A DNA stretch of 64,000 nt from Haliotis cracherodii (lineage: Eukaryota): contig NW_027266286.1 of NCBI RefSeq assembly GCF_022045235.1, positions 55,242,001 through 55,306,000 of the forward strand, in the 5' to 3' direction. Positions 3,085 to 61,410 of the stretch are shown here, piece after piece (positions within the stretch are counted from its first letter, which is position 1; each line of letters begins with the position of its first letter). The position numbers and the translations under genes are program-made. Below the pieces are notes generated by a model. The model was not told the origin of the DNA, did no database searches, and was given only the letters and a program-made list of their open reading frames with translations.

Positions 3085-3600
3085 AGGTGACTAAATTGTT
3101 TGCCTGTGACAGACCCGATTGTTTACACACCGCTGTCATTTTGTTGAAATATAGATGACTAAACGATGACTAAAGATGACTAACTGGTTTGCCTGTGACA
3201 GACCCGATTGTTAACACACCGCTGTCATTTTGTTGAAACATAGATGACTAAACGATGACTAAAGATGACTAACTGGTTTGCCTGTGACAGACACGATTGT
3301 TTACACACCGCTGTCATTTTGTTGAAACATAGATGACTAAATGATGACTAAATATGACTAACTGGTTTGCCTGTGACAGACACGATTGTTTACACACCGC
3401 TGTCATTTTGTTGAAACATAGATGACTAAATGATGACTAAAGATGACTAACTGGTTTGCCTGTGACAGACACGATTGTTTACACACCGCTGTCATTTTGT
3501 TGAAATATAGATGACTAAATGATGACTTAAGATGACTAACTGGTTTGCCTGTGACAGATCCGATTATTTACACACCGCTGTCATTTTGTTGAAATATAGA
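3085..3600. repeat. Minisatellite, 89-bp unit, ~6 copies
   Basis: tgcctgtgac recurs at 3101, 3190, 3279, 3368, 3457 and 3546. Confidence 0.95.
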
Positions 3601-3754: not shown

Positions 3755-4094
3755 GAAGTCCTTTCCATGGATCCTGAATGGTATGAAGACTCTGATGTCG
3801 TCCTATCAGAGGATGAAGAAGACGAAGATGATGATGAAACGGACGACAGTTATCTATTAGCAGAAAGTCAGCCTGAAAGTGGAGAAGTGTTGAGTGGCAA
3901 AAGAGTCCCTGTGAAGGATGATGAAACCTCCGTCTGTGAGACACGCAGTGACTCTGACAGTGGAGAAGCTGCAGTGTCTTCAGACATTGTTCATACTCCC
4001 CCCCGGAATCTGCCAACAGATCAACTATGTGAAGGTCGCAGGTTGTTGACAGATGGTGGTAATGCTCTTGATGGAAGAGTCTTGCACCCTGGAA
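3755..4094 (+). CDS. Gene A first coding exon, acidic and probably disordered (MDPEWYEDSDVVLSEDEEDEDDDE...)
   Basis: catcag| acceptor at 3754, ATG at 3767, strong donor a|gtaagt at 4095, phase 1, coding-like composition. Confidence 0.65.
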
Positions 4095-7000
4095 GTAAGT
4101 ACTCACAATGTCGCCAGGACCATAAAACTTAATAAAATCACAATGTATTTGTGGCACCGTATGTATAACAAAAATCTTTAAACAGGTTATCTCAAAATTA
4201 GAGATAAGGGGCTTTTATTGGAATTTGGTGAAAGAGTCGAAAGATGATCAATTTTATGGTTTCTGCTGACAGCTTGAAATAATACAAAAGTAAAGTCTGT
4301 GCGTATTTTACAGAATTTAATTGCTCGTAATTAAGGGTGCATATAACACATGAGTGCGTATTATACACGAATAAATGTACACGAATTGTGTACATTAATC
4401 AGTTGGAAGGGTGCTAATTTGGATTGTTCACAAGCAAATATATTGGCAAATATGGCCGTGGGCGTTTATTAGAGCGGGGTGCTTATTACGTCGAATACGG
4501 TATTCGGAAATGTGATTCATAATACAGAAAATCACTTCAGTTCTTGACAAGATGGTCATGTGGCAGTTGTATCTTAATTGTAAATAATATACCAATCAAG
4601 TAATCACTGTTTTTTTTACTTCCTCAAGAAGAGGATTGTGGTGTGCAGATTCCAGAGGACACTGTCTTTTACACCAGGGGAAGGAATTCTCACAATGTTT
4701 TCAATCTCAGTGGAAATACTGGCTGCGTGCATGTTACATTCAAGGAAAACAAAGAACAGCAAAAAAAATTTGAAATTATAATCCACGTTGGTATTTCTTA
4801 AGATCAGGTACATCCAAATTGTTATTAAGGTTCGAATAGGCTATTGCACATCATTTTGTTTTCAAAATGGAATAAACTTTGGCACATGTGTAGTTAGTAG
4901 TGGGGTATGATCTATGTGTTCTGTTTTTGCGATATTTTACGTTTTGAAATATACACAAAGAAAAAGGTTAAGCACATCCCTATTTCTGAACCATGACAAA
5001 TGGCAAAAATCATGGCATAGGATGACTGACCACAGGAGCTGGGCAATACCAGTGTTATCGGATAGAACAATCATTTGACAACAAATAAAGAAGATATTGG
5101 TGAGTTGTGATTGAAATTTACTGTCAAAAACATCATGGTAACACAGGTACTGTTTTTATACCTCAGACAGTATGTCAAAAAAGTATGGAGCTTCAAGTAA
5201 ACGAGTTACGTTTGATGTTTCATGTGAAAATGTTCCTTAAAGTTTCTACTTGACATGACACGTGAAACAGATCAGTAACGGGTATAACCGCCACGTGCCC
5301 GGATGACGCATTCCACCCTGCGTCTCATTCCTTCAGTCAGATGTAGGATCTGTTGATGGGTCAACAACAAAAACATTGTAGATATCGCTTCAATGAAATT
5401 GCATTACAATACTTTGCAGACCACTGTGACGTCATTGGTTACCATGACGACACAATCAAGTGACATCACAAATGGCTCTGCTACTGAAGCTTATTACTGT
5501 CTACAAACTAAAAAAGTTGGAAGAATTATGTTTGATGATAAATAATATCTCACCCTCTTGTCTTTTGATAACAAATATATCAACACTCATTGGTAAAAGT
5601 GGGACAACTACTCGGCAAGCTTCAGAGTTTTTCCACACGAGTTGATATGTTTGATATCAAAAGACGAGGTGAGATTCTCTATTCGTTGACATGTATACTG
5701 TTGACATATCCAGGTGAACTTCCGTGCCGTAGCATTATTGTTAACATATCTATTTGATTTTATATATTTCTAAATCCTGTATTTGCCTTGTGAATTGTGT
5801 GTGTTTCTTCCTTTCGTTTGTGAGTGAGGGAACTCATCACAATCTGTGTACGAATCTGAGTATGTTAATGTTTGATACATGATTTCTTACTTATTATTCA
5901 GGAGGGGACACATCTGTATTGGACTCAGGTGAGTTGTGTTCATATGATACTATTATTATCCCCCGCCACGAAGTGGAAGGGGCATATAGGAATGGGTGCC
6001 GTCCGTCCGTCCTTCCGTCGGCCGTCCTTCCGTCCGTCCGTCAGTCCGTCCGTCACATTTCGTTTCCTGAGCAGATTTTGAAAACCGTACTATATTTCTT
6101 CATCAAACTTGGCACATAGATAGGTCTAGTGGTGAACTGGTGCCTTTTGATAGTTTGGGATTTTAAAAAAATGATTTTTTGAGCTTCCATGGCAACGACT
6201 TTGATTTAGACTGAAAATGGCGGTATTCCTCGTTTCCGGAGCAGATCATAAAAAACGTACTATATTTCTTCATCAAACTTGGCACATAGATAGGTCTAGT
6301 GGTGAACTGGTGCCTTTTGAAAGTTTGGGATTTTAAAAAAAGTTATATTTTTAGTTTCCATGGCAACGACTTTGATTTAGACTGAAAATGGCGGTAGTCC
6401 TCGTTTCCGGAGCAGATCTTGAAAACCATACCATATTTCTTCACCAAACTTGGCACATAGATAGGTCTAGTGGTGAACTGGTGCCTTTTGATAGTTTGGG
6501 ATTTAAAAAAAAGTTATTTTTCAAGTTTCCATGGCAACGACTTTGATTTAGACTGAAAATGGCGGTATTCCTCGTTTCCGGAGCAGATCTTGAAAACCGT
6601 ACTATATTTCTTCACCAAACTTGGCACATAGATAGATCTAGTGGTGAACTGGTTCCTTTTGATAGTTTGGGATTTAAAAAAATAATATTTTTCAAGTTTC
6701 TATGGCAACGACTTCGATTTAGACTGAAAATGGCGGTAGTCCTCGTTTCCGGAGCAGATCTTGAAAACCGTACCATATTTCTTCACCAAACTTGGCACAT
6801 AGATAGATCTAGTGGTGAACTGGTTCCTTTTGATAGTTTGGGATTTAAAAAAAAGTTATTTTTCAAGTTTCCATGGCAACGACTTTGATTTAGACTGAAA
6901 ATGGCGGTAGTCCTCGTTTCCGGAGCAGATCTTGAAAACCGTACCATTTTTCTTTACCAAACTTGGCACATAATGTCATCTCACAGTATTGAATACATTT

Positions 7001-10000
7001 CCTTTCTTGTCGGTAAGTTCTGCATTGCTTGAGTCAATGTTCCTCCAAAAGTGTCATGGACACAGTTGTTGCAATCTCTGACTAACTTCTTTCAGAAACA
7101 CAACTCATTACAAATACAACAGTGTAACTGATCTTAAACCTACTCAACTGTATAAACAATATATATTCTTGTCAACCATAGTCTGTACTTCACTTGCTTG
7201 ATAATGGTGTTAGAACCTACACCGAAACCATCGCTCCTAATTGTAATGAAGAAGATGTTCGTCCATATGTCTCATCCTTCCTCATTACAAATTCAGTAAC
7301 ATATTCTATCATATACTGCAGATGGAAAAACAACACCAGCAATCATTTTTATTTAGTGCTGCAATTAGGCCATTTACAAAAAGGCCCAGTGAACATTGTT
7401 CACAGGAGCTAATGCATTGCACACACCCGACATGTCATATTGGCGGGGGATGTGAGTATTTCATGCTTGTTATTACTCACCTGTGGGGATTCCGGGTAAG
7501 GATAAAGGTCCCCGGCAACCTATACCTGTTGTAAAAGGTGACTAATTAAATGGATCGAATTGTGACAATGTTCATTCTATGTCATCGCACCCAAATTGTG
7601 TGGATCAATCCTCATGCTGTGAATCTCTGCACTGTTTGGTCCAGATTTGATTATTTACAATTTAGCTGGGATATACAAATAATTACAGAGGTATATCATT
7701 GTTGAACACTTTGAATAAAATATTCTCTACGATAATAGATAATCTTGTTAAAAGGTGGATATCCACACAAACTTTGTTGTCAGAATGTCAAGCAGGTATC
7801 AGATAAAATTATTCTACTATTGAACAGGCCTTTACTCTTTATTTATTGATTCAAAAGCATCTCAGGAAAAAAGGTTGACATGTTTACTGTATATTTGTAG
7901 ATTCAAAACAAAGCCTTTGACTCTTTGGATTGACTGAAGTTATTGTATTTATTGCTTAAATCTGGTATTCACGGAATCGATTATTATATAATAGGTACAG
8001 AAATGTCTAACCATCTGTACGAGTTAACAGGTATGTAAGGACTGATATGGTTACAACAGAAATAACCGTTAGGTTGCATATTGTCACCTGTTCTGTTCCT
8101 ATTGTATGAAGAATTAGTTAAAGAAATAATCTCAAACGACAGTATGGGAATCTCTATTGACGACACCATTCATAATTTATCAATACTGTTGTTTGCCGAC
8201 AATGTTGCTATCTTCGCTGACTCAGTTGTATTGTTGCAGAAGATAATTTGTAGGTGAATATTGCTTTAAATGGGGTTCATCCATTAATGTAAGTAAGACG
8301 AAAGTAGTAGTATTAAATGGCGCGAAAATGTCAAGAACTGAGAAACACATGAGAAATGGACGATTAATGGAAGCGCCATAGAGGTGATCTCATACCATAA
8401 ATATCTAGGTATTATCTTTTCATGCAGAGACCCCAGACGATCCTGTGTAGAATATGTCTTCAACAACCGATGCTTGCTGTAAAATGTGACTAACGGAATC
8501 GGGTGGTCAGGCTCGCTGACTTGGTTGATGCATGTCATCGTATTCGATGCTCATGCTGTTAATCGAAGGATTGTCTGTTCCAGACTCGATTATTTACAGA
8601 CTGCTGTCATATAGCTGAAATATTGTAGAGTGAGGCGTTAAACAACAAACAAACAAATAAGCAAACTTTTCATGCAGAAATATGTTTACAAAGGTACATG
8701 TATGTGAGACACTAGCTATCCGAGCGGAGAAAGCCTTGCATGTTATCAAGCGATTTATTATCAAATATGTAGACTTGCCACTTGATTCAGCATTTAGATT
8801 ATTTTAAGGGGAAAATTCAGCCAATCCTATGATATGGTATAGGGCTTTAGCGTATGAATATTCATAATTTTTCAGAAAAAGTTCATACTAAATTCTGCAA
8901 GCTTATATTAAATATTAGTCACAAGGCATCGAACAAAGTTATATTGGGAGAATGTCGTCGCTTTCCTCTATGGTTTTATGCCCGTTCTAGAGTTATAGCC
9001 TACTGGAAAAGAGTTACTAGATATCCCTCTAAAAGATATTCTAAATGCTGTCATGACTTAATAAGAAATAAGATGATGTTGGAGATATTAACTGCGTTTC
9101 ATTTCTGCGAACTACCCTTTTCCAGTCTGGTTTTGGACGTGTCTGGATTAAGCAAGGTGTCGGAAATAAAGATCTGTTCTTGTAGCTGTTTAAAAAGAGA
9201 AGCAAGGGCATCTACCAACAATACTACGATATCAAAGTGTCGAAATCCGTAACTTACTATTCAGATTTCAAGCTTCAAATCACGCCAGAAAGATATCTGG
9301 TAGCCATAAAAAAACATTAAACTTGAGCCGAGTATTAACAAAATGTAGATGTAATTGTCATGATTTGCATATCAGAGCCCCCAGATTTCCCCAAACTCCT
9401 GAAACAGAAAATACTACATATTTTTACTGCAACAATGGTACAGAAGATGAATAGCATGTGTTAATGATTTGCCCAGAACCAGTGACATAAGAATAAAATA
9501 TTACCTAACTATTTTGTAATCAGGCCCTTTAATGAAAGGTTTCTGATACTAATACAGTCTGGTGACGATAGTCTCTCAATTAAGCTATCTCTATTACTGC
9601 ATCATATATTTCGCAAGAGAACACTCCGTTTGTTAGCAAATGTACAGCATATATTAAGGCTCATTCGTTGTAACATTTACGCCTTAATTTAGACATATTG
9701 TACCATTAGTCTTCTCGGCACATACATGAATAAACTGTCTGTCTGTCACAGTGTTACTGTGTACGATATATTATTCAATGATGGATTTTGCTTAATGACT
9801 ATAAAACGTGTTTTATGGATTTTATTTACAGGCTCAACATCTGTCGGTGTCATTGGTCCATTTAACAGTATTGTGGACAGGAACATTACCATGGGCATAA
9901 ACTATGGGTCTGTTGTACAATCTGGCGGTAAGTCTGTTTAGTCAAGAAGAATGTAGGCCATCGGCCCATACTCACAGTGGTGGTTCATTATAATATGTTT

Positions 10001-13000
10001 GCAAAATTGATATACTGTGGTTGACAAAATACACTGTGTACACTATATTGTTTATTATGTGGGAATTAAATACTAAACCTAACAAGAGTCTCTCAAATGG
10101 TTTGCATGGTTGATAAACATGGTGAAGTGTTTTATGGTCTTAACAGGAGAATATTAAAATTATGAATAGACAGTTGCAGTATATATGTTTTAGCTATATT
10201 TTTCTTGAGGAGGAAATAATATTTTTCAGATCCTAATAAAATTATCTTCTTCATAATTACTTTTGCAATGTATACACCACCTTTATTCTCTATATATGTA
10301 TGTTGTAATAACAACCAGTCTCAACCTTAGACGTCACGCCGAAGACCCGGGTTCGATTCCCGACATGGGTACAATGTGTGAAGCCCATTTCTGCTGTCCC
10401 CCGCCGTGATATTGCTGGAATATTGCTAAAAGCGGCGTAAAACCAAACTCACTCACTCACTCACTCAACCTTAGATGGCATGAACTGCTACGAAATCTTG
10501 CTAGTACCAGTCTGAATTGAGAAAGAATGATTTATTTTGAGTAACCTTACCTCATTGCATCTTCACTTTTCTCTACCTTTGAACTCGTCACGACATGGCT
10601 GAAATATTGCTGATTTGACGTAAAGCATAAACTGACTCACTCACTCTACTTTTGAAAACTTTGACAGTAATGACCCAAAGACGAAATTCGAAATTCTTTC
10701 AAATGTATTTTTGGGAAACAAAACACTTCCTTTTTTTAGTAACAAACTACATTTGTACATGGATTCATAACTTGAATCTTCCAATATACCTAACTGTAAC
10801 AAGTATTTTTTTTCAGGCTGATAAAAAGTTCCCAGTACATAAATAACTCGTTTTCAAACAAACGCTTTTACCCACAGTCGCAAAAAAGAATAATCTTCAT
10901 TTGAAATTAGTCATACGACTAACCAATGAAATATGATCATGGTATCTTTGTATACTGTTATAGCGTTTCAATTACAGACATTTTACATGTTTTTGTTCAG
11001 TTACACAAAGTGGTTACACTGAAAACAAAGCTGTTGTCGGAACAAACAATGGAACTATCAATAAGATTTGAGCTAGTTGTTGTAAGTTTTATCAACTGTC
11101 AAATACGAACACTGTGTACAATGAAACTCCTTTGTTATTTTTTGTATGTAGCCTTCATGCAGAAATGTGAAAATCCTGACTACTTGTGTTACGTGTACAT
11201 TAAAGCCTGTGTACATCACGGAGTTTGACAAGCATCCAATGATGCGAATCCGCCCGATGAATTAATCTTATTCCCAAATTAACCTGATCGCCGTGATCTA
11301 ACTGAAATGTGTTCAAAGCGGCATTTAACCCACACTGATTCCCTCACGAACAGAGTGTCAAATCTCTTTTCATTACTTAAATAAAGCGACAAAACCCCTT
11401 CGATATCCAATAGAAACCTCTGCACAAAGCAGAGTCAATTTTAACGATTACAACTATATCATGAGCATCTGTTTTTCAATCACTCTATAATAGTAATGAT
11501 ACCAGGTGTTCGCGAAAAGGTGAGCGTAGTAAGGAAGTATCAATTAGTTATTCTATTATATATCATGTCTCGTGGATTGAAATTGTGGCAATGCCTGTAT
11601 ATATCCTCCAGTTACCTCCTTGGTGCAAGTCTTTCAAGTGTTGTTCTCTGAGGGTCTTCTTATGTTATCATTACTATCAACGGTTTTACGATTCGTTTCA
11701 GAAAATTCGATTTTGAGCAGCCTTCAGGGTGAGATGTTTTTCTCTGGTCAGTTATGCTCTCTCACAAAAATGTATAGTGATTTTCTTTGTGATTGGTAAG
11801 ATTGTTTTGTAAAAGGGCTAAATTAACGTCCAATTTCAAAAGGGCCAAAACACCACATTATTCAGGAAGGGACAAATCTGTGTTGGACTCAGTCATAGGT
11901 GTTTTCATATGATGCTATTATTAATAATAACAGGTGGGGGTTACGGGTAAGGATAAATGTCCCCAGCAAAATATTCCTGGCGTGAAAGATGACTAAATGG
12001 ATGGAATGGTCAAGCTCGGTGACATTGTTTATTGCATGTCATCGTTCCCAAATTGTGAGGACCAGTCCTCATGCTGTCAGATACTGAATTGTCTGGTCCA
12101 CACTTAATTCTTTACACTATAGCTGGGACATTGCTGAACATGTCGTTAAAGAACAAATAAATCATACCAAGACATATTAGATAACATATTATACATATAT
12201 TGTATTTTTGTAATTCGTCTATTCATTTAATTTGATTTTTTTTCAGACCAGAGCAAACTCAGACTTTTCGATATTGACGAGCGAGTACTTGTTAAAACTG
12301 ATGCAATCAGTCAGTTCGAAAATCACTTGTCGCATCATGGAATGATTATAATCACTGGACGATCCGGTGAAGGGAAGACAATGGCATCTCTGTTGCTGTT
12401 GAAGGTTTTTTTATCGAAACATTCCCACACACCATTGATATTGACGGACCCTCGTCAGTGGGATCTTATTCCTGCATCTCGTAAATCGAAACAGAAGTAT
12501 GTTGTACTCATTGATGACATATTTGGCCAGTCAAATCTGGTACAGGATCTTCAGACCAGGTGGGAGCAAAAGTTTCCAATGATGATGCCCCTGGTAAAAG
12601 CAAGAATTGTGTCTCTTATTATAGTTTCCAGAACAAATATCTTTCAATATAGTAAATCCAATCTCACAATGTTCGAGAACTCTTCAGCAAGAGAATTTAC
12701 CTTGGGGTTTTCGAAAGAAGAGAAGCTTCTTGTTTTAGAAAATCATATCAAAACCTTTGCAAAAGACCTGAAGCTTACTGCAGAACAGAAGATTCGGATC
12801 ATACAAACAGACCAACTGTTAGGATTTCCACAATGTTGCTATCTGTACGCCACCAGCAAACCGAAACATTCTGAAAGTGTTGCTTTCTTTACTGAACCAA
12901 TGAGGTACTTGGCAGACTCTATAAAGAACATGCGTGACAAAGACCCTCTGTCATACCTAGTGTTATTACTCGTGATGTTTCATGACGGGGTATTGCCAAA

Positions 13001-16000
13001 AAAAGTTTTTCAACCTTTTGAAGGGGAACCTGTAGATATACCCTTTCTAGATAATATTGTTCAAATATGCTCAGTGAAACAAAAACCAACCCTTTGCATC
13101 ATGAAAGACGTAGCAGACAGTTTGTTGACAGTATACCTATCCTTGAATGAAAGTAACTATACATTCCTACATCGCTGCATTTATGATGTCATATTCCTTG
13201 AATTTTGCAAAGGCAGTTTGTCAAAGGGAATTCAAATGTGTGCCATAAGTACTCTGCTTGAATATGTCAGAACAAAACCTGCAGCTGACAAAAGGTATGG
13301 TAGTGATTGGATTGTAATAGTTTCAGAAGATATGTTTGGTATTCTTGCTGAGAGGATTACAAAAGAACTTTTGTCTGACAACTGTCAGTTGGTAACTGCT
13401 CATCCATGTTTGAAGGATACGGACTTCATTTCCTTTCTGACAAAATCCTGGGATGTGAAAAAAAAAGCACAAATAGCAACACACCCAGTAGAGAAACAGG
13501 TAGTCAGTGCAACCATATACTTCACGGAAGAAGCAGTGGACGTCCTGACCAACATATTCACCCAGGACACCCAGGAGGCCTTACCATTGCAGCAAACCAC
13601 TTTGAAGTTATTTGAATATGAATCCATCACTTCATATCTCACTATGGCTGGAGCATATAATTTGGCACTTCATTTGCTCAATTCACAAAAGGCAACGGAC
13701 GCTGACCATTATGAAAAGACAAGAAATAGTATGTTTGTCTGTTCATTTTATAAATCAAACTCTGAAAAGGTGGCACTTCTATTTGAACAAGATGCTGAGC
13801 TAACAACAGAATGCGTTATAGCGGCATGTGCAGCTGAGAAAGCACATGAAGTACTCTTTGATATGGCTCTTGGTTGCATGGAGGAAACTGATTCAGACAT
13901 GGACACCCTGCAAAATATGTTATCACTGTGCATAGAACGCCAACAATTCCACTTTTTCAAGGGATTAATCAGTATGATATTGGAACCAAAAAGAATGCAA
14001 CGGACATTTAGACAAATACTGTTGCAATTTCATAATGCAATTCCTACATTTCTTCTAACAACAAATGGACAAGAAGAACAGTTCAATTTAAAGGATATAT
14101 TGACAGTGCTGAATGATGTGGAAATGGGAAATGTTACCGATGACTGTGTTCTCCTATCTGCAGGATGTAATGATACCTTAGCTTTGAAGGCTGCTATTCA
14201 CCATGGAGGTAACGCCCACTGCACAAATAAATGTCAGCAGACACCTGTTCATCTTGCAGCAAAGTATGGATCTGAGCAAACTTTGGATTTCCTTTATGGG
14301 CTTTGTGGAAATGCCTCTCCTGGAGATATATATGGCTTTACACCTCTGCATTATGCGGCACTATCCTCGTTTCATAGTTCCGAAAAAGTGTTCACTGCAC
14401 TGAAGTGGAAGTCAAAGATAACTGACAAAACGCTAACTGGAAAGACAGCCCTGACACTGGCTGTAGAAGAAGAAAATATTGGCTCTATAGACAGGTTAAT
14501 ACTGTCAATCAAAGAACAGGGTTTACATTGCGAATATCCCATGCACGTTGCCGTGTCTGCTCTGATCTGTACACTACAAAGATGTCATACCACCAGAGAT
14601 GTTGCCTTAGTGCAACGCAACAAAGCTAAGATGATAGCAGTGTTGCAGCACCATGGATATTCGTTACTGGATGTAAATAATAAAAACACAACCTCTCTAC
14701 AAATGATTGTGAAATCAGGCACCGTACATTTATTGACATATTTACTAAAATTTTCCAATGTAAACAAATGTGTTATTCGAGATACGGAAGTACATGTTAC
14801 CATTGACAGTTTGAAGTCCCTTATTTACTGTGCTGCTGAACATGGTCATCTGAACGTTTTCACATATTTCTTTGAAAACATGTCATTCCAAACTGATAAC
14901 CACGTAGAGGACTATGTGAAGTCCGCTCTGTGTAATGCAGCTGAGAAAGGTCACCTCAACATTGTCCAGTTCTTTGTGGAGAAGGGTGAGGATATGAATA
15001 TAAAATATGAAAGGGGTGTGTCGCCTCTGTGCATTGCAGCTAAAAATGGTCATTTGAAGATTGTCAGATATTTTTATCTTAAAGGTGCTGATATGAGTAT
15101 TACGCCAACATATTGGGATCCACTTCTGATCAGTGCAGCTAACAATGGCTACACTGAGATTGTTAAGTGTTTGGTAGAGGAAGATGCTGATGTGGATGTG
15201 ACAGATGAAAATAGACACTCACCCCTGTGCTGTGCTGCTCGAAATGGCCACACTGACATTGTCCAGTACTTGTCAGAGACAGGTGCTGATGTGACTATTA
15301 CAGATGAATATGGGAACTCACATACCTGCATTACAGCTGAAAATAGAGAGAATAAAAGTGAGAAGTCTTTGGGAGAGGAAGATGTTGATGTGAATATCAT
15401 AGATACATATGGGATCGAACCCCTCTGGTGTGCGTTTGGAAATGGTCACATTGGAATTGTTCGATACTTGGTAGAGCATGGTGCCAGTGTGCATAATGCA
15501 GATGCATATGGGAACCCATTCCTGTGTAAGGCAGTTGACAGTGGAAACACTGAGATCGTCAGACTCCTTGTGGATAAAGGTGTTGATGTAAACACACCAG
15601 ATACATTCTGGACATCAGTTTTGCGGAGGGCAGCTGAATGTGGTAACACAGAGATGGTCAGAATCCTTGTGGAGAAAGGTGTTGACGTAAACATAACAGA
15701 CACATGCTGGACATCACTTCTGCAGATTGCAGCTGAACGTGGTGACACTGAGATGGTCAGGGTCCTTGTGGAAAAAGCTGTTGATGTAAATATACCAGAT
15801 ACATTCTGGACATCATTTTTGCAGAGGGAAGCTGAAGGTGGTAACACTGAGATGATCAGACTCCTTGTGGAGAAAGGTGTTGATGTAAACACACCAGATA
15901 CATTCTGGACATCAGTCTTGCGGAAGGCAGCTGAGCTCGTCAGACTCCTTGTTGGGAAAGGTGTTGATGTAAACACGACAGATACATTCTGGACATCAGT

Positions 16001-19000
16001 TTTGTGGAGGGCAGCTGAACGTGGTAACACTGAGATGGTCAGACTCCTTGTGGAGAAAGGTGTTGATGTAAACACGACAGATACATTCTGGACATCAGTT
16101 TTGCAGAGGGAAGCTGAAGGTGGTAACACTGAGATGGTCAGACTCTTGGTGGACAAAGGAGTTGATGTAAATATACCAGATACATTCTGGACATCAGTCT
16201 TGCGGAGGGCAACTGAGATCGTCAGACTCCTTGTGGGGAAAGGTGTTGATGTAAACACGACAGATACATTCTGGACATCAGTTTTGGAGAGGGCAGCTGA
16301 ACGTGGTAACACAGAGATGGTCAGACTCCTTGTGGAGAAAGGTGTTGATATAAATATACCAGATACATTCTGGACATCAGTTCTGCAGAGGGCAGCTGAA
16401 CGTGGTAACACCGAGATGGTCAGACTCCTTGTGGAGAAAGGTGTTGATGTAAACACACCAGATACATTCTGGACATCTGTTTTGGAGGTGAACGCTGAAC
16501 TTGGTAACACTGAGATGGTCAGGCTCCTTGAGGAGAAAAGTGTTGATGTAAATATACCAGATACATTCTGGACATCATGTTTGCAGAGGGCAGCTGAACG
16601 TGGTAACACAGAGATGGTCAGACTCCTTGTGGAGAAAGGTGTTGATGTAAATATACCAGATACATTCTGGACATCAATTTTGTGGAGGGCAGCTGAATGT
16701 GGTAACACAGAGATGGTCAGGCTCCTTGTAGAGAAAGGTGTTGATGTAAATATACCAGATACATTTTGGATATCAATTTTGTGGAGGGCAGCTGAACGTG
16801 GTAACACAGAGATGGTCAGGCTCCTTGTGGAGAAAGGTGTTGATGTAAATATACCAGATACATTTTGGACATCAATTTTGTGGAGGGCAGCTGAACGTGG
16901 TAACACAGAGATGGTCATGCTCCTTGTGGAGAAAGGTATTGATGTAAATATACCAGATACATTTTGGACATCAATTTGGTGGAGGGCAGCTGAACGTGGT
17001 AACACAGAGATGGTCAGGCTCCTTGTGGAGAAAGGTGTTGATGTAAACATAACAGATACATTCTGGACATCATTTTTGCGGAGGGCAGCTAAACGTGGTG
17101 ACACTGAGATGGTCAGAATCCTTGTGGAGAAAGGTGTTGATGTAAATATAGATACATCCTTGACATCAGTTTTGTGGAGGGAAGCTGAACGTGGTAACAC
17201 TGAGGTCGTCAGACTCCTTCTGGAGAATGGTATTGATGTAAACACACCAGATACATTGTGGACATCACTTCTGCAGAGGGCAGCTGAACATGGTGACACA
17301 GAGATGGTCAGACTCCTTGTGGAGAAAGATGTTGATGTAACTATACCAGATACATTCTGGATATCAGTTCTGCAGAGGGCAGCTGAACGTGGTAACACTG
17401 AGATGGTCAGACTCCTTGTGGAGAAAGATGTTGATGGGAATTTACCAGATATATTCTGGACATCATTTTTGCAGAGGGTAGCTGAACGTGGTAACACTGA
17501 GATGGTCAGACTCCTTGTGGAGAAACGTGTTGATGTAAATATACCAGATACATTCTGGACATCAGTTTTGGAGGTTGAAGCTGAAGATGGTAACACTGAG
17601 ATGGTCAGACTCCTTGTGGAGAAAGGTGTTGATGTAAATATACCAGATACATTCTGGACATCAGTTCTGCAGAGGGCAACCGAACGTGCTAACACCGAGA
17701 TGGTCAGACTCCTTGTGGAGAAAGGTGTTGATGTAAATATACCAGATACATTCTGGACATCAGTTCTGCAGAGGGCAACCGAACGTGCTAACACCGAGAT
17801 GGTCAGACTCCTTGTGGAGAAAGGTGATGATGTAAATATACCAGATACATTCTGGACATCAGTTCTGCAGAGGGCAGCTGAACGTGGTAACACAGAGATG
17901 GTCAGACTCCTTGTGGAGAAAGGTGTTGATGTCAACACACCAGATACATTCTGGACATCTGTTTTGGAGGTGAACGCTGAACTTGGTAACTCTGAAATAG
18001 TCAGGTTCCTTGTGGAGAAAGGTGTTGATGTAAATATACCATATACATTCTGGACATCATGTTTGCAGAGGGCAGCTGAACGTGGTAATGCAGAGATGGT
18101 CAGACTCCTTGTAGAGAAAGGTGTTGGTGTAAATATACCATATACATTCTGGACATCATGTTTGCAGAGGGCAGCGGAACGTGGTAATGCAGAGATGTTC
18201 AGACTCCTTGCGGAGTATGGTGTTGATGTAAATATACCAGATATATTCTGGACATCAATTTGGTGGAGGGCAGCTGAACGTGGTAACACTGAGATGGTCA
18301 GGCTCCTTGTGGAGAAAGGTGTTGATGTAAATATACCAGATACATTTTGGACATCAATTTTGTGGAGGGCAGCTGAACGTGGTAACACAGAGATGTTCAG
18401 GCTCTTTGTGGAGAAAGGTGTTGATGTAAACATAACAGATACATTCTGGACATCATTTTTGCGGAGGGCAGCTAAACGTGGTGACACTGAGATGGTCAGA
18501 ATCCTTGTGGAGAAAGGTGTTGATGTAAATATAGATACATCCTTGACATCAGTTTTGTGGAGGGAAGCTGAACGTGGTAACACTGAGGTCGTCAGACTCC
18601 TTCTGGAGAATGGTATTGATGTAAACACACCAGATACATTGTGGACATCACTTCTGCAGAGGGCAGCTGAACGTGGTGACACAGAGATGGTCAGACTCCT
18701 TGTGGAGAAAGATGTTGATGTAAATATACCAGATACATTCTGGACATCAGTTCTGCAGAGGGCAGCTGAACGTGGTATCACAGAGATGGTCAGACTCCTT
18801 GTGGAGAAAGGTGTTGATGTAAATATACCAGATACATTCTGGACATCAGTTTTGGAGGTTGAAGCTGAAGATGGTAACACTGAGATGGTCAGACTCCTTG
18901 TGGAGAAAGGTGTTGATGTAAATATAACAGATACATTCTGGACATCATGTTTGCAGAGGGCAGCTAAATGTGGTAACACAGAGATGGTCAGACTCCTTGT

Positions 19001-20603
19001 AGAGAAAGGTGTTGATGTAAACATAACAGATACATTCTGGACATCATGTTTGGAGGTTGAAGCTGAAGATGGTAACACTGAGATGGTCAGACTCCTTGTG
19101 GAGAAAGGTGTTGATGTAAACATAACAGATACATTCTGGACATCATGTTTGCAGAGGGCAGCTGAATGTGGTAACACAGAGATGGTCAGACTCCTTGTAG
19201 AGAAAGGTGTTGATGTAAACATAACAGATACATTCTGGACATCATGTTTGCAGAGTGCAGCTGAATGTGGTAACACTGAGATGGTCAGACTCCTTGTGGA
19301 GAAAGGTGTTGATGTAAATATAACAGATACATTCTGGACATCATGTTTGCACAGGGCAGCTAAATGTGGTAACACAGAGATGGTCAGACTCCTTGTGGAG
19401 AAAGGTGTTGATGTAAACATAACAGATACATTCTGGACATCATGTTTGCAGAGTGCAGCTGAACGTGGTAACACTGATATGGTCAGGCTCCTTGTGGAGA
19501 AATGTGTTGATGTGAATACACCAGAAACATTCTGGACATCTGTTTTGGAGGTTGAAGCTGAACGTGGTAACACAGAGATGGTCAGACTCTTTGTGGAGAA
19601 AGGTGTTGATGTTAACATAACAGATTCCTTCTGGACATCAGTTCTGCAGAGGGCAGATGAACGTGGTGACACAGAGATGGTCAGACTCCTTGTGGAGAAA
19701 GGTGTTGATGTAAACACACCAGATACATTCTGGACATTAGCTTTGCGGAGGGCAGCCGAATGCTGTAACACTGAGATGGTCAGACTCCTTGTGGAGAAAG
19801 GTGTTGATTTAAATATACCAGATACATTCTGGACATCAGTTCTGCAGAGGGCAGATGCACGTAGTAACACTGAGATGGTCAGACTCCTTGTGGAGAAAGG
19901 TGTTGATGTAAACATAACAGACACATTCTGGACATCAGCTCTGCAGAGGGCAGCTGAATGTGGTAACACTGAGATGGTCAGACTCCTTGTGGAGAAAGGT
20001 GTTGATGTAAACATAACAGATACATTCTGGACATCATCTTTGCAGAGGGCAGCTGAATGTGGTAACACTGAGATGGTCAGACTCCTTGTGGAGAAAGGTG
20101 TTGATGTAAATACAGGTATACATGGGCACACACCTCTTTGCAGTGCATCCGTTAATGGACACATTGATATTGTCCGTTTTCTTGTTGAGATTCGGTATGC
20201 CCTTGTCCTTCTGCGCACTGCAGCAGAAAATGACAACATTGAGATAGTCAAGTATCTTTTAGACAATGGGGTTTATCTTTACATAATGAAAACATATGGT
20301 AATTTCCCTCTTTGCACAGAAGTTGCAAATCTACACCTTCAGATTCTTCAGTATCTCGCTAAAAGATGTGTTAATGTGAATATGAAAGATAGTTGCTGGA
20401 ATATACTTGTGTGCACTGTAGTTGCCAATGGACACTCTGAGGTTTTCAAGTATGTTGTTGAGAGTGGTGCTGATGTTAATATGACAGATAGCCATGGCAA
20501 ATCACTAATGTGCATTGCAGCTGAAAAAGGTCATATTGAGATTGTCAAGTATCTTCATCAAAAAGGTGTTCCTGTGAATATCACAAAGGACAATTTCAGA
20601 TAA
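3767..20603 (+). CDS. NLR-like nSTAND3 NTPase-ankyrin repeat protein (gene A). Spliced model: 3767-4094, 4629-4790, 5902-5928, 9832-9927, 11702-11728, 12247-20603
   Basis: The terminal exon follows tttcag| at 12246 and is in frame with the 2758-aa ORF. Walker A GRSGEGKT (12357-12380), Walker B VVLIDDIFG, and IIVSR, GFPQCC, FFTEP and YTFLH motifs are typical of nSTAND3, followed by >55 ankyrin repeats. All upstream exons have AG/GT ends and phase-1 junctions and splice without stops. The terminal exon is near certain; the 5' exon chain is inferred. Confidence 0.85.
4629..4790 (+). CDS. Gene A putative 162-nt exon (KEDCGVQIPEDTVFYTRGRNSHNVFNLSGNTGCVHVTFKENKEQQKKFEIIIHV)
   Basis: Polypyrimidine tract with caag| acceptor, open frame in phase 1-1, weaker donor g|gtattt. 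Confidence 0.5.
5902..5928 (+). CDS. Gene A 27-nt microexon (GDTSVLDS)
   Basis: ttattcag|...cag|gtgagt, phase 1-1, frame-preserving. Confidence 0.6.
5953..7472 (+). mobile_element. DINE-1/HINE-like non-autonomous Helentron-type element with an internal 171-bp tandem array
   Basis: Subterminal inverted repeat atcccccgcca (5958) / tggcgggggat (7441), (GTCC)n microsatellite at 6000-6053, ~5.5 repeats of 171 bp (6060-6972). The element is absent from the duplicate copy of its flanks near 11920. Confidence 0.75.
7700..9748 (+). mobile_element. Decayed CR1/L2-group LINE, 3' part
   Basis: RT remnants (LLFADN at ~8187, KYLGI at ~8399, KFCKLILNIS...ILGECRRFPL) and an aataaa(ctgt)n tail at 9728-9748. 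Confidence 0.8.
8428..8665 (+). mobile_element. SINE family 2 (long central domain) inserted in the LINE
   Basis: cgggtggtcaggctcgctgacttggttg core, (AAAC)n tail, flanked by the direct repeat ttttcatgcaga (~8417 and ~8667). Confidence 0.85.
9832..9927 (+). CDS. Gene A 96-nt exon with RHIM/amyloid-like motif (STSVGVIGPFNSIVDRNITMGINYGSVVQSG)
   Basis: tttacag|...ggcg|gtaagt, phase 1-1. A paralogous exon with the same donor lies at 58516-58602 (-). Confidence 0.75.
10330..10466 (+). mobile_element. 5'-truncated SINE family 1
   Basis: Family-1 body with (ACTC)n tail, flanked by ctcaaccttaga repeats. Absent from the paralogous gene B intron near 58125. Confidence 0.9.
11702..11728 (+). CDS. Gene A 27-nt microexon (ENSILSSLQ)
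   Basis: tttcag|...cagg|gtgaga, phase 1-1. Length and both splice sites are conserved in the paralog at 51424-51450 (-). Confidence 0.75.
11866..11892 (+). pseudogene. Degenerate duplicate of the 5902-5928 microexon
   Basis: ttattcag|gaagggacaaatctgtgttggactca... matches 5894-5928, but the gtgag donor is replaced (cagtcatagg). Confidence 0.6.
15581..20115 (+). repeat. Coding tandem array of ~46 ankyrin units of 99 bp (VDVNIPDTFWTSVLQRAAERGNTEMVRLLVEKG)
   Basis: 99-bp period is directly visible. Two units lack 5 aa and two lack 1 aa. Confidence 0.97.
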
Positions 20604-31656: not shown

Positions 31657-33182
31657 TACTCTTAAAAAAAAGAAACCTGACACTGACTTTCAAAATGTAT
31701 TATAATGCGATTGTTTCAAAATAGGACACAGAAACCATAATTGAAACACTGTTTGAAGATCAATGTACACAATGTTCAAAACATTAATCGTGTCACCTAG
31801 ACAGACACACGTACACGATACAGTTAATGTCACAGCGGTACAGAAAATGTCAGTATCGGTTGTGCTCACCACGTGCATCAATCACCGCTTGACACCGACG
31901 ACCCATAGATGCAATCAAGTTGCAAATAACAATGTTGGATGTGCTGCCATTCATGCTGAAGTGCATCAAGAAGCGCCGGAAGTGTTTGGGGCGGTGGATT
32001 CCTTCTGCGACCACGTCGATCCAAATCGTCCCACAGATACTCAATCGGGGACAAATCTGGTGACCGGGCTGGCCAAGGTAATGTCTGGATGTTGTTGTGG
32101 TGTAAGAAGTCCTGACAAACACGTGCAATATGCGGTCGAGCGTTGTCCTGCTGGAACTGCCCGCCATGAACGTTGACGTGAGGAAGAACGCAAGGCTGTA
32201 GGATCAAGTCTCTGTAACGCACACCACCTGTCAATGAACCTGCCACATGCACGAGAGGCGTCCTACCACCGTGATGAATTCCTGCCCATACCATGACACT
32301 ACCGCCGCCAAATGGGACAGCCTGCTGCACACAGTTGGGGACGTAACGTTCACCCCGACGTCTGTAGACACGTGCGCGCCTATCAGCACGTGTGAGTAGG
32401 AAACGGGACTCGACAGTAAACAGTACATTTCTCCACCTTGCACTTGCCCATCTAACCCTCTGTTGGCACCAAAGCAGATGGTCGCCAGATGACTTGGGGT
32501 CAATACCTGACGTCGAACAGGTCTTCGTGCAAAACGTCCAGCCTTCCCCAGTCTGTTGCGTACCGTTTGATCTGATATTCTGCGTACCCCAGGGATCTGT
32601 GTGGTTGTAGACGTGGCTGTGGTAGTGCGGTCTCGGAGGTGTCACAGCCGGATGTATCGATCTTGTGCTTGGGTTGTCACCCCTGGTCTTCCTGACCTTG
32701 GTCTGTCGTCAACTCTGTTGGTGTTGTTGTATCGGGTCCACAGTGCGGATATTGTCTGTCTGGATACACCAAAGTGCCTGGCCACTTCTTTCTGAGTTGC
32801 TCCAGCTTGTAATCTCCCAATGGCGTTGTTCCGTTGAGCTGCATTCAATTTTGACAGTCTGTCACCGCATCTACTGCCGTTATAAGGACTGTATGAACAG
32901 CCGTTAATGTGGATTTTTTTTCCCATTCAGCAGGGGGGCCTGCATGCCTAAATGCAGGATCCTGTGCTTTGCACGTTTTTTACAGGCGGTTGCGTTTGGA
33001 TGAAGCTGTAAAATTGATCCCCAAACCCTACGTTTATGTGCTCTGCATGTGTTTTCGCGAATTATAGAGACATCATCTTTCTGTTTGACTTATTTGGTTC
33101 TCATTTAATGTAATTATTTTAGATATTTGACAAAAAGTGGTTTAACATCTATGTCAAGTTTCTTTTTCTTTTTTGAAGAGTA
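31657..33182 (-). mobile_element. Tc1-family DNA transposon, full length, defective transposase
   Basis: TIRs tactctt(c)aaaaaaagaaac..tgac, TA at the left end, HTH (RPRSGRP), FT[V]ES / QQDNARPH / SPDLSPIE (DD34E type). Frameshifts present and the first D is mutated to V. Confidence 0.95.
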
Positions 33183-45798: not shown

Positions 45799-48700
45799 TT
45801 AATTGTCTGTACTCATGTCAGAAAATCTTCCGATAAGTTCAATCAGTTCACGATCACTGGCACCAAGTTCATCAACATTGAAAAACCTCACGAGTTTCTC
45901 TGCAACAACCTGATGACCTCCACCACTAGCTGCATGTAAGCATGTACCTCCATAGTCATCCTTGCACAGGACATCAGCGCCACATGACAGCAAATGATCA
46001 ACAATATCTGTGTATCCACGGTAACAGGCTATCATTAATGGGGTGGCATTTTTCGGTCCACGCTTATTGATGTAAGATGGTTCATCACCTCCAACAGATG
46101 TAAGAAATTTCACAATGTTGTACCAACCATTGTTGCAGGCCACATATAGACAACCGCCGCCAAGATTGATATCTGCTCCCTTTTTTACTAGTTCCTCTAC
46201 AATGTCCATGTGCCCTTGTTGACAGGCAACCATGATTGGAGTCCAGCCATCTTTAGTGAGAGAATCGATGTTGTGATCAACGCCAAGACAAAGTTGAACC
46301 AAATGGAAAATACCAGATTTTGCTGCAACGTGCAGACTTGTTCTTCTTTTGTTGTCCACCATCTGTATGTCAGCGCCATTGTTCATCAAGAATGTTACCA
46401 TATCAGTATGACTGTTCTGAATAGCATACATTAAGGGTGTTTTCAATAGTGAATTTACACAATTCACAGTGGCTCCTGTTTGTAGAAGCCACTCAGCTGT
46501 TGGAACGTGCCCTTTCATTGCTGCCAAGTGTAGACATGAATTGTTCTCTTGATCGACGGCATCTAAAACAGCATGTCTACGTTTTAGTTCCTTTGCTGTT
46601 TCCAACTTCCCATGCCTGCAAGCACACATTAATGGCGTTCTTCTGAACTTACTACCAACATCTTCAATGTTCATTCCATGATCAAGAAGTATCTTTACAA
46701 TATTGGTTTCTCCCTTCATACATGCAAGATGTAGACATTTGTTTGTAACAGAGACAGAATCTGAGGTGTGTGCTCCATTCTCTAAGAGCAACTTCACGAT
46801 ATCTGAAGCGTAAATCAAAGGTGTTCTTCCATATTCACCACCTTGGTTCAAATCCATAGATTGTCTGAGCAGCAATTCAGCAACGTCAAGGCACCCTCCT
46901 CTGCACGTGAGATGAAGACAGTTGTCACTCTCTTCATCTAATAGTCCTGGAGCTGCTCCCCTGTCAAGTAGCATCTGGGCCAAATCAGCGTGTCCCCGAT
47001 AGCAAGCATGCATGAGAGCTGTCATACCATTTCCCCCAAGAACATCAATTGCAGTGTTGACAGGGTCAAGCAGTATACGCACACATTCTGTAAACCCATT
47101 GGCAGCAGCCACGTGGATTAACATATCTCTGTTGTCACCATATTCTCGAGGGCAGTCTTTGTCTGAGGGCACTGCAGGAGAGGCAATACTTTTTGCTGTA
47201 GAAAGAGATTGAAGATACGGTCTGGTTTTATCTTTGTTATGCAGGATATCCCCGACAGTTGTAGTGGCTATTTTGTCAAACCAAGAGGCAGATTGACCAA
47301 CGAGTTCTTTTAAGTAGCTCAAGTGCAAGTAGCTCAAGTGCCCATGCATGCAGCACCCAAGATAACATTCAAGGATGTCTGATTCACATAGCTGCATTCG
47401 TGGAATGTATTTGCAAAATGCACCTGTGTCCAAATATGATGACCAGAATAAGAATCCTCGATCCTTGTCACGTTGAAACGAAATATTATCTGCTGGAAAG
47501 TAGGAGAAGAGTTTGTCAACCAGGTCCTCAAAGGTAAAACATTGATGTGATAATGAGAGGGACAAATTACCATTAGTAATTTCTCTTCCAAGTCGTCTCA
47601 CAAGATTCTCCGTTAAATCATCTTCAATATTAATAAGGAACGTATTCATATGACCATCTTTTGAGATGCCTGTATTCTTGGTTTCTGAAATCCAAATTCT
47701 GTCAACTATGAACTTTAGACTGCAGTTCTCTAAGGCGACAACAGGGTGTAAATCAATCACAACGCATGCCACAACATCATGAATAGCTGGGTGACTAAAT
47801 TTTGCGCAATTGTTCTTTAATAGCACAATCAGTGTATCTTTTTCGTTTCTTGCAGATTTCCTGATTTCAGCAGGATTGTTAGCGTCTGGCATGATTTCCC
47901 CCATCTGTGATATCTTTTTGTCCAATCCGGAATCCCTTCGCCGTTGAGGATCTAAGAGATCATTTAAGTGTAGACCACCTTCATTGAGTATCATAAGCAG
48001 GAGAACTGCAGCCCTGTACCTTTCTTCATAGCGTGAAAAGATAACAGCTACTACATCATGCAAGTAGATCCACGGTTTCTTAAAAAAATCCAAGGCATTT
48101 CTTTCTAGAGAAGAATTCTTCACAAACAGTTGGCATATGTAAGGAAATCCCAGTGTCGTGTACTCCAGTCTTGCAACTGCTAACATTTCATCATGCGTTA
48201 GATGGAATTGCGATCCTTCCAAATGTTTTTTTAAAATCTGTTCTTTTTCAGTATCACCAAGAGGAGTAGATGTAGTCAGATTTATGACAGGTGACAGCAA
48301 TGAATTTTGGTATTTAATTACCATTTGAGAGACACTATTCCAGACGTTTGTCCGACTGGTCATAATGACCTTCAAAGGCATCACGTCCTTTTCCATTTCC
48401 AAAAGTTGGAAATGATGTTCTAAATATTCAAACATAGCGTCACAACTCTTCACAACATCGGCTGATGATGCAAAAGTACCAAACACATTATCACAAACCA
48501 GTAACGTTTGAGTGGGTGTGTTGTACTTAAAGTTCTCCCATTTATCTACACAAATCACGCGGTGTCCCTCTGCTCTGTATTTTCCTGAGATGTAGCGGGC
48601 CATTGTTGTTTTTCCTGATCCAGGCGAACCACAAATAAATACATGGTCCTTGGTTTGCAGGGCATTCCAGACTTCACGATAAGCCCCAGTTTCTATAAAT

Positions 48701-49549
48701 ATTGTCTCTGCGTATAGCTCCTCAGTTTCATCTGTGATTTAATAGAATGTATGTATTATTAATAAATTTCAGCCAGTAGCAAAGATGCTTCTACAATGGT
48801 ATTGAATTACCATTTTTATTAATGAGTGAGTCAGGTTTTACGCCGCTGTTAGCAATATTCAAGCAATATCACGGCGGGGGACACCACAAATGGACTTCAC
48901 ACATCGTACCCATGTCGGGAATCGAACCCGGGTCTTCGGCGTGACGAGCGAACGTTTTAACCACTAGGCTACCGGACCGCCCCTACCATTTTTATTACCT
49001 TCGAGGGCAAACATATCGGGGTTCATAAAAATCATAGGTGCTCTAGGGTCGCATCACGTCACCAGACAACGCTGTACTGTTTCCGTCATCTGGGCGGCAT
49101 TGTTGACATCATTCGAATATTATTATGACGTCAGATCGGAATGACGTTACTTTAGAAACGGCGTCATAGCTGAGGATTGTTGACGTCATTCGACAAATTG
49201 TGGTTTCGCTGCTGTTGCGACTTGCTGTTCTTGTAGGTACACACTACAATTCGTCTCTGTATCTAGACATCATCTTCGGTAATAAATAGAACATTATATT
49301 CGTGTTCAGGTCATACTATGTTTACGACACTCGTGCCTGAATTCCAGTATTGCTCTCGCTCGGAAATACCGTAATTTAGACACTAAACATAGTATGAAAT
49401 TAACACTCATATAATATCCTCTATATACATGTTTATAAATATATACCAGCTGACAAACATTCCTGTGCATCACTGACAATCATGGGTTATATTAAATATA
49501 CGCAAACAAAGGACGATCTTTCTACTGATTAATATATTGATGTCCATGA

Positions 49550-60964: not shown

Positions 60965-61410
60965 TCAAATCACCATGTAAATTATTAACAGTGTTGTGGC
61001 CAGTGGAATGGAGCATTCCAAACCAGCATGGAGTACCTGCCAATACAGTTTCCTGTCAGGGATGGCAGGGGAAGTATTTAAACTACCTTTACTTTTCACT
61101 TTTCTGTTGTTGCATTCACGGCCTTTATCCCCCCATATGATCTTGGGCAGAGGTGCGGTTGCAAATATTTTCCTCATGGTTTTGACCACAGAGTCTGGGG
61201 TCTTGTTTTTCATGGGTTCCACCCATACATATCTTGAAAAAATATTGATTGCTATTAACAAGTACGTGACACCATCATTGTCCGAAGCTATGTTAGACAC
61301 GTCTGCTAAGTCTATATCCCACCGAGCATTCAAACATGTAGCCACTACTCTGTTGTGCTTGAACTTACACCTCAAAGGCAACTGAAGCGAATAGGCGTCT
61401 TGTGGTGTAA
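60965..61410 (-). mobile_element. Polinton/Maverick-like retroviral-type integrase fragment
   Basis: DAYSL...WDIDLADVSNIASDNDGVTYLLIAINIFSRYVWVEPMKNK...GDKGRE resembles the Polinton rve integrase N-core. Frameshifted and truncated. Confidence 0.7.

Follow-up and report, generated by a model that had tools for sequence, protein, structure and literature searches.

In a 64-kb stretch of the genome of the abalone Haliotis cracherodii (C23:55242001-55306000, free of N, in a host genome of 1.18 Gb; hereafter the window), two STAND receptor genes place a short peptide just ahead of their nSTAND3-type nucleoside triphosphatase (NTPase) domain. In both genes, hereafter A and B, this peptide occupies a small exon of its own, and our subject is the copy in gene A, exon A, at window positions 9832-9927. 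Sequence comparison supports the conclusion that the encoded tail motif is genuine and selectively maintained, beyond what recent duplication alone would leave. Receptor architecture and selective maintenance together agree with an output motif on an NLR-like receptor without a head domain, a reading that is partly supported. We tentatively propose that the motif serves receptor-tail assembly or adaptor docking, an assignment that we place a little short of probable.

A motif exon upstream of the NTPase

With 100 kb added to either flank of the window, the region examined measures 264 kb and holds four STAND genes: C and B on the minus strand, and A and D on the plus strand. The exons on which the argument turns are the following.

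9832-9927, plus strand: exon A of gene A, a 96-nt cassette exon with phase 1 on either side, whose tail motif reads ...NITMGINYGSVVQSG / ...VGVIGPFNSIVDRNITMGINYGSVVQSG
11702-11746, plus strand: mini-exon of gene A, ENSILSSLQGEMFFS, phase 1/1, part of the captured cassette described below
12247-20603, plus strand: giant exon of gene A, encoding the nSTAND3 P-loop NTPase and then ankyrin repeats over most of the remainder (Pfam nSTAND3, E 3e-19, and Ank families; acceptor ttttcag/AC)
58516-58602, minus strand: motif exon of gene B, reading (A)LNVSGASHSNVNQSIVIGMNYGSVVQYG, peptide ALNVSGASHSNVNQSIVIGMNYGSVVQYG; identified by its splice sites and contained in XP_071114827.1
51406-51450, minus strand: mini-exon of gene B, EDSASSSLQGEMVFS
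45799-48731, minus strand: large exon of gene B, nSTAND3 NTPase and ankyrin repeats
C23:55202157-55202246, about 50 kb left of the window: motif exon of gene C, in XP_071115437.1 (P0009), reading TSITVTGASHSNVYQNVSIGINYGSVVQSG

Exon A is bordered by an acceptor, tttacag/GC, at 9831/9832 and a donor, G/gtaagt, at 9927/9928, and its frame (9834-9926) translates to STSVGVIGPFNSIVDRNITMGINYGSVVQSG. Its final G can be joined in frame to the mini-exon and equally to the giant exon. A first-pass annotation, made by a model from the letters of the window, had proposed N/G/Q/V/I-rich peptide exons upstream of both NTPases, and the splice sites and frames of the A and B exons bear this out. The continuations that it had read behind these exons, ENS in gene A and EDS in gene B, are real 45-nt phase-1 mini-exons (11702-11746 and 51450-51406) in frame with the nSTAND3 P-loop exons that begin at 12247 and 48731. 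The NTPase assignment is supported by profile scores: against a PF20720 cut-off of 27.2 bits, the gene A large exon scores 69.6, the gene B open reading frame 28.1, and the full protein of gene B 73.6.

That protein, XP_071114827.1 (P0006), is 100% identical to gene B across the NTPase query and chains exon 1 (42 aa), the motif exon, the mini-exon and the NTPase, with the motif at residues 43-71 and nSTAND3 at 98-258. Splicing of the motif exon, which the first-pass annotation had left to be confirmed, thus has the backing of RefSeq models for gene B (XP_071114827.1) and gene C (XP_071115437.1). The H. rufescens orthologue LOC124125780 retains the motif exon in all four of its RefSeq isoforms, which vary at the mini-exon borders alone. 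For gene A, exons were searched singly rather than as one spliced model, and full-length analyses used database proteins.

The motif spans about 25-30 residues (exon peptides, 28-31 aa) and sits about 50 residues ahead of the Walker A loop. It follows the pattern phi-x-V-[T/I/S]-G ... phi-x-phi-G-x-N-Y-G-S-V-V-Q-x-G, where phi is a hydrophobic residue. The B and C copies are uncharged; in the A copy D, R and P occur once each. Searching all 1.18 Gb with a degenerate DNA pattern for NYGSVVQxG and with a profile of the three exons recovered exactly three copies of the motif exon. Three weak further matches in the genome were rejected as noise, having a stop codon or microsatellite flanks.

A search for sequencing runs found none recorded as RNA; to look for use of exon A, we placed contigs of one DNA-like run and of three runs presumed to be RNA on positions 6400-12399. 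Contig depth was low, at 1.5-15.7 in the bin of exon A and 2.8-9.4 in that of the mini-exon, with repeats dominating at 8400-8800 and 10200-10600. In two of the three presumed RNA runs, the intron bin that follows exon A (10000-10199) had zero depth. These data only suggest that gene A mRNA includes exon A, and we regard the exon as a candidate part of the transcript.

Evolution of the motif exon

The motif exon has changed faster than the introns around it. In the comparison of gene B with gene C, identity is 96.5% and 95.9% for the two flanking introns and 84.9% for the exon (14 of 93 positions differ, versus 19 of 480 in the introns; Fisher p = 2e-4), a divergence 3.7 times that of the flanks. 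Comparing A with B or C, the introns are 83-88% identical and the first half of the exon 71-73%. The end of the exon behaves in the opposite manner: over its last 28 nt A equals C and B differs by one base, while the A and C introns differ by 12-17%.

Most of the change replaces amino acids. Nei-Gojobori ratios of non-synonymous to synonymous change (dN/dS) for the exon range from 1.3 (B-C) to 3.8 (A-B and A-C), compared with 0.59 for the large exon; exon 1 also reaches a ratio of at least 1. Of 18 changes between the A and B exons, 16.5 are non-synonymous, and the open frame and splice sites are nevertheless intact in all three copies. Together, these values indicate that the first two thirds of the exon outpace their neutral flanks, mostly by replacements, while NYGSVVQxG stays fixed.

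These results decide several points left by the first-pass annotation. Its observation that the NYGSVVQxG end is conserved while the exon start differs extends to gene C, the nine residues being invariant in all three copies. Its proposed check, constraint on the motif relative to intron, gives a divided answer: the nonapeptide is invariant, but purifying selection does not act on the exon in its entirety (dN/dS 1.3-3.8). Its own caveat, that conservation could simply reflect recent duplication, does not hold, because the introns are more alike than the exon, the nine residues do not vary, and the motif is found in distant paralogues.

A pattern of this kind might also arise in a functionless, fast-evolving disordered linker, spread by tandem or inverted duplication and exon shuffling, whose end is fixed by splice or enhancer constraint or by gene conversion. 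Such a linker would account for a dN/dS of 1 or more in both this exon and exon 1, for a conserved block that crosses the exon end into the intron, for the presence of just three copies, all within 100 kb, and for a motif profile that finds close relatives only. It sits poorly with the B-C divergence of the exon, which exceeds neutral drift, and with the preservation of frame and splice sites in every copy, including the one that gene A has captured. The motif pattern moreover recurs in paralogues from four species whose NTPases are just 22-30% identical. We consider a functionless linker rather unlikely.

A tail without a recognised head domain

The first-pass annotation had seen no death-fold, TIR or enzymatic N-terminal domain in either gene, and this assessment is upheld. 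We found no Pfam domain in residues 1-97 of P0006, in gene A exons 1 and 2, or in the N-termini of six distant paralogues. AlphaFold2, run on a 26-sequence alignment, models residues 1-87 of P0006 with no secondary structure and a predicted local distance difference test (pLDDT) score of 22-30; the fold starts at residue 88. With a tail that lacks Pfam domains and is modelled as disordered, no conventional effector domain is seen upstream of the motif. The exon peptide had no match among PDB sequences at E <= 10 (phmmer), and a search of a protein atlas with the tail returned no usable match. A complex prediction with four copies of residues 38-92 of P0006 scored 0.03, a value that speaks neither for nor against assembly.

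Disorder combined with rapid change invites another explanation, in which the motif is regulatory bait: a tripwire or decoy targeted by pathogens, which would switch the receptor on when cleaved or modified, or an autoinhibitory strand lying on the receptor's own ankyrin or NTPase domain. A disordered N-terminal exon that diversifies faster than its introns is what host-pathogen conflict would be expected to produce, and the invariant ...VVQ-S/Y-G has what we take to be a resemblance to a glutamine-type protease site. Mimic sites usually vary themselves, however, and here the variable part lies upstream of a fixed Q-x-G; the B copy also has Y after the Q. AlphaFold2 also leaves the tail undocked from the folded domains. 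A bait role is, in our judgement, improbable.

Tail motifs across the receptor family

The receptors belong to an expansion that is large and lineage-specific: the H. cracherodii genome has at least 118 exon matches to the nSTAND3 NTPase, clustered on many chromosomes (C6, C13, C23, C26, C67, C78 and others). A full HMMER scan of the B-type NTPase against 1.84 billion representative sequences returned 532 relatives, many of which carry a short segment of G/N/Q/S plus V/I 45-70 residues before Walker A. All motif-bearing relatives that we looked up come from Haliotis (H. cracherodii, H. rufescens, H. rubra and H. asinina).

Some of these segments share the motif of exon A. A jackhmmer search seeded with the tail of an H. 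rubra paralogue (P0099) aligned exon A with P0006-P0009, P0064, P0148, P0129, P0019, P0021 and P0078. The resulting consensus, phi-x-V-[T/I/S]-G, x-[S/A]-G/H-[G/S], phi-x-phi-G-x-N-x-G, contains three conserved glycines. P0099 has two tandem copies of the motif, beginning at residue 2; in P0171 it begins at residue 7. A homologue search with residues 1-70 of P0099 recovered only P0099 itself.

Other subfamilies have other motifs in the same place. We distinguish at least six further subfamily-specific tail motifs, such as NLNIGGTQNIG, NVSVGGQQVIQ, VNVVNFIQNVNVSQGTSHGAV and SNSSNVAMGD. Two H. rubra isoforms, P0166 and P0141, differ by an alternatively spliced 29-aa cassette that carries an extra tail motif of another class, NVCVGGTQVINKY. 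The tails of P0018 and P0036 consist of three or four tandem SSDVVLQQTGHDAGV units followed, beside the NTPase, by an SS-x-V-x-LSLGGQNAGIM unit, a repeated motif of another class. Other RefSeq isoforms of paralogous STAND genes (P0087 with P0161-P0165; P0175-P0177 of H. rufescens) show NAGNAG or alternative-donor shifts at the mini-exon behind the motif exon.

Comparison with RHIM and amyloid motifs

The first-pass annotation had described the exon as RHIM-like. We searched the genome in six frames with the Pfam RHIM model (PF12721) at a cut-off of 20 bits. The model misses all three motif exons (C23:55251834, 55300517 and 55202157) and matches five other loci above the cut-off.

C16:3934639-3934698, C16:3881628, C14:4411996, C16:6210105 and C56:12715589: canonical RHIM loci

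Sequences at these loci include LINIVNSQNVQIGHYNRMYF, followed by an acidic tract, and CSGVQIGPNNS. The three exon peptides matched no Pfam family in hmmscan even at E <= 10. The motif also lacks the G-phi-Q-phi-G core that is the common signature of RHIM, PP and BASS3 (Dyrka et al. 2020): A and C read G-S-V-V-Q-S-G and B reads G-S-V-V-Q-Y-G. The RHIM-like label was therefore not borne out, and on sequence grounds the motif is not a member of the RHIM family. Its likeness to the canonical RHIMs of RIPK1, RIPK3, TRIF and ZBP1 is limited to V-Q-x-G, N/G-rich flanks and a nearby N-Y pair; it differs in having S or Y after the Q and V in place of the first G.

The best functional analogue is a looser class. 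The cRHIM is a loosely conserved, beta-prone segment of about 25 aa with a V/I-x-x-G core, situated in the cytoplasmic N-terminal tail of a receptor and sometimes on an alternative exon (PMC9387487; PMC13506858). The motif exon fits this description, a loose one that is easily matched by chance, and the definition is too permissive for sequence to settle membership. Like the cRHIMs of insect PGRP-LC, PGRP-LE and IMD and of crustacean SRB2, the abalone cores IVIG, VSIG and ITMG lie in the N-terminal tail of an immune receptor. Unlike them, the abalone receptor is a cytosolic STAND NTPase rather than a PGRP or scavenger receptor. We identified no IMD-like partner carrying the motif, and no search for IMD homologues was made.

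A parallel in layout lies outside animals. NLR-associated amyloid motifs, so far known from fungi, bacteria and archaea and with no example described from Metazoa, act as matched pairs: one copy is N-terminal on the NLR and the other C-terminal on an effector, usually the product of a neighbouring gene, at 43-56% identity. As with the HRAM/HET-s, sigma, PP and BASS1-10 motifs, the abalone motif lies upstream of the NTPase in a receptor without an effector domain, many motif classes occur among paralogues, the tails are rich in G/N/Q and V/I, and some contain tandem pseudo-repeats. The abalone motif differs from those motifs in having no matching effector at the sensitivity reached and no match to a Pfam model.

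These likenesses make it conceivable that the motif itself forms amyloid, in the manner of RHIM, PP or HRAM, and that STAND oligomerisation nucleates a fold which is then templated onto a separate effector. The architecture matches the fungal and bacterial paradigm of a short N-terminal motif on an NLR without an effector domain; the tail is disordered, its G/N/Q/S and V/I composition is typical, and P0099 has tandem copies. Conceivable partners exist in the genome: the canonical RHIM proteins, and a TICAM-like adaptor in which a TIR domain is accompanied by a RHIM-like tail. Against this stand the negative PF12721 result, V-V-Q-S/Y-G in place of G-phi-Q-phi-G, and an exon dN/dS above 1. No partner emerged either genome-wide or in the 264 kb, so the effector with a matching motif that the first-pass annotation had predicted did not materialize. 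The family profile gives no score on the canonical RHIM loci or on the TICAM-like tail. We regard amyloid templating by this motif as quite unlikely.

The TICAM-like adaptor is an observation of separate interest. At C1:17258885-17258938, an open frame of 554 aa ends in the tail PVNIVGATVVQIGNDNTVKLLGGQVVSG, where the RHIM model has a sub-threshold match of 17 bits. Residues 59-211 of this frame match the TIR domain of TICAM2 among PDB sequences (E 2e-4), so that a mollusc protein shows a layout like that of TRIF. Its ...GATVVQIGNDN... slightly resembles ...GSVVQSGEDS...; a statistical link is absent.

Possible role of the tail motif

How might such a motif act? By analogy with insect cRHIMs and with the N-terminal amyloid motifs of fungal and bacterial NLRs, triggering of the ankyrin sensor could lead the NTPase domains to oligomerise and so bring the tails together. 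The clustered motifs would then constitute the output, either through homotypic beta-sheet assembly or by docking a putative adaptor.

Several results weigh against such an output role. Conservation does not stop at the exon end: the block runs on through about 80 nt of the downstream intron, and part of it may therefore be owed to a tract of gene conversion or to a splicing element. The six-frame whole-genome profile search revealed neither a fourth motif copy nor a partner, though a partner below about 50% identity could escape it. A lax hmmsearch of all six-frame open reading frames in the 264 kb, using the profile of this motif and of six other classes, likewise returned only STAND tail exons. 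The profile built from the three exons reaches only P0006-P0009 even when iterated, and no other subfamilies; the link to more distant paralogues comes from one iterative search in a small database. For gene A itself, a protein search turned up no database model, the joint 9927->11702 is not among the listed contig joints, and 34 nt identical to gene C could explain the signal at exon A. Self-association of the tails, finally, is a proposal.

We found no description of such tail motifs on animal STAND receptors in a literature search. Expansions of STAND/ankyrin proteins in marine invertebrates have been reported with Death-like or TRADD-N heads and with no mention of RHIM (Kaur et al. 2021, PMC8195603). 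The abalone genes resemble these in their nSTAND3-type NTPase, fast-evolving ankyrin repeats and lineage-specific expansion; they differ in bearing only a short disordered motif tail. Among animals, the known carriers of RHIM and cRHIM motifs are kinases, adaptors and PGRPs rather than STAND receptors.

A bolder proposal would make the abalone nSTAND3-ankyrin proteins the first animal NLR-like proteins with N-terminal amyloid or prion-like signalling. The tail motifs, at least seven in number, would serve as orthogonal templating barcodes shuffled as phase-1 mini-exons, and the partners would be RHIM-type adaptors or other STAND tails diverged beyond the reach of profiles. We give this proposal little credence at present. 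An animal STAND family of more than 100 genes, whose only head is a disordered tail with beta-prone motifs that vary by subfamily and sit on shuffled mini-exons, nonetheless provides an inexpensive test case, with peptides of about 30 residues, for amyloid signalling in Metazoa. Even if no amyloid is involved, the family illustrates ways in which NLR-like receptors of invertebrates that lack a head domain may vary their output: by exon capture, by symmetric phase-1 cassettes, and by exon change that outpaces neighbouring introns.

Origin of gene A

Identity between NTPases divides the four clustered genes into two types: C and B are 90% identical, A and D 85%, and the two types only about 20%. 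Gene D (XP_071114828.1) lies just right of the window. The remaining exons of genes A and B, and the segment that contains exon A, are as follows.

3767-4094, plus strand: gene A exon 1, with ATG, acidic, 109 codons plus 1 nt, ending in phase 1; located by tblastn with the N-termini of P0001 and P0007; donor GGAA/gtaagt; no Pfam domain
4629-4754, plus strand: gene A exon 2, carrying a different N/G/V tail motif, GRNSHNVFNLSGNTGCVHVTF, of a class shared with P0001-P0003
5902-5928, plus strand: gene A exon 3', GGDTSVLDS, phase 1/1, with a strong donor, CAG/gtgagt
9745-11851, plus strand: captured 5' cassette, homologous to the B/C-type 5' region and occupying part of the last intron of a D-type gene, as seen when the 5' region of gene A was compared with the 264 kb by blastn
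11866-11898, plus strand: gene A exon 3'', a second copy of exon 3, GRDKSVLDSVI, phase 1/1, with a weaker donor
58937-59063, minus strand: gene B exon 1, MDAPDGT...SDASA, 42 codons plus 1 nt; tblastn of P0006 and splice sites

Genes A and D have in common an acidic exon 1, a small exon 3 and, between them, an exon 2 with the other N/G/V motif. The 2.1-kb segment that contains exon A and its mini-exon is homologous to the 5' region of B and C, not to that of D. This cassette is nested in a larger insertion with direct repeats at its borders (5893-5958 = 11857-11923 and 7467-7674 = 11918-12131), and exon 3 therefore occurs twice in gene A. Judged by these homologies, gene A is a rebuilt gene whose cassette was captured from a B/C-type gene. 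All of its small exons are in phase 1/1, so every combination of them stays in frame.

Gene A has lost the ancestral donor of the exon that encodes its original tail motif: at the end of exon 2 (4753-4756) it reads AAAG/AA where its paralogue D reads AAAG/GT. About 40 nt downstream lies GTTG/gtattt, a possible cryptic donor that would preserve the phase. In H. rufescens, XP_046345060.2 (P0007) is a hybrid that joins A/D-type exons 1-3, the motif exon and a B-type NTPase, and its exon 2 is without the stretch that bears the A/D-type motif. This hybrid suggests either that exons have been shuffled between the two types of receptor in the sister species or that the gene model is a read-through.

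Repeats and transposon remains

Short interspersed elements at 10332-10465 and 8430-8660 have dozens of copies in the 264 kb, and contig depth over them is very high in every run. The first of them interrupts the captured cassette of gene A, and an adjacent loose-end consensus, GGGTAGCCTAGTGGTTAAAGCG..., looks tRNA-derived. Tandem arrays with periods of about 89 and about 171 bp lie at 3085-3600, upstream of exon 1, and at 6060-6972, inside the insertion in the gene A intron. Transposon remains, located as follows, comprise fragments of DDE_3 (Tc1/mariner-type) transposases, two of them in the long intron of gene B, and a fragment of a retroviral-type integrase (rve).

31881-32645, minus strand
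49735-50235, minus strand
56863-57417, plus strand
60968-61381, minus strand

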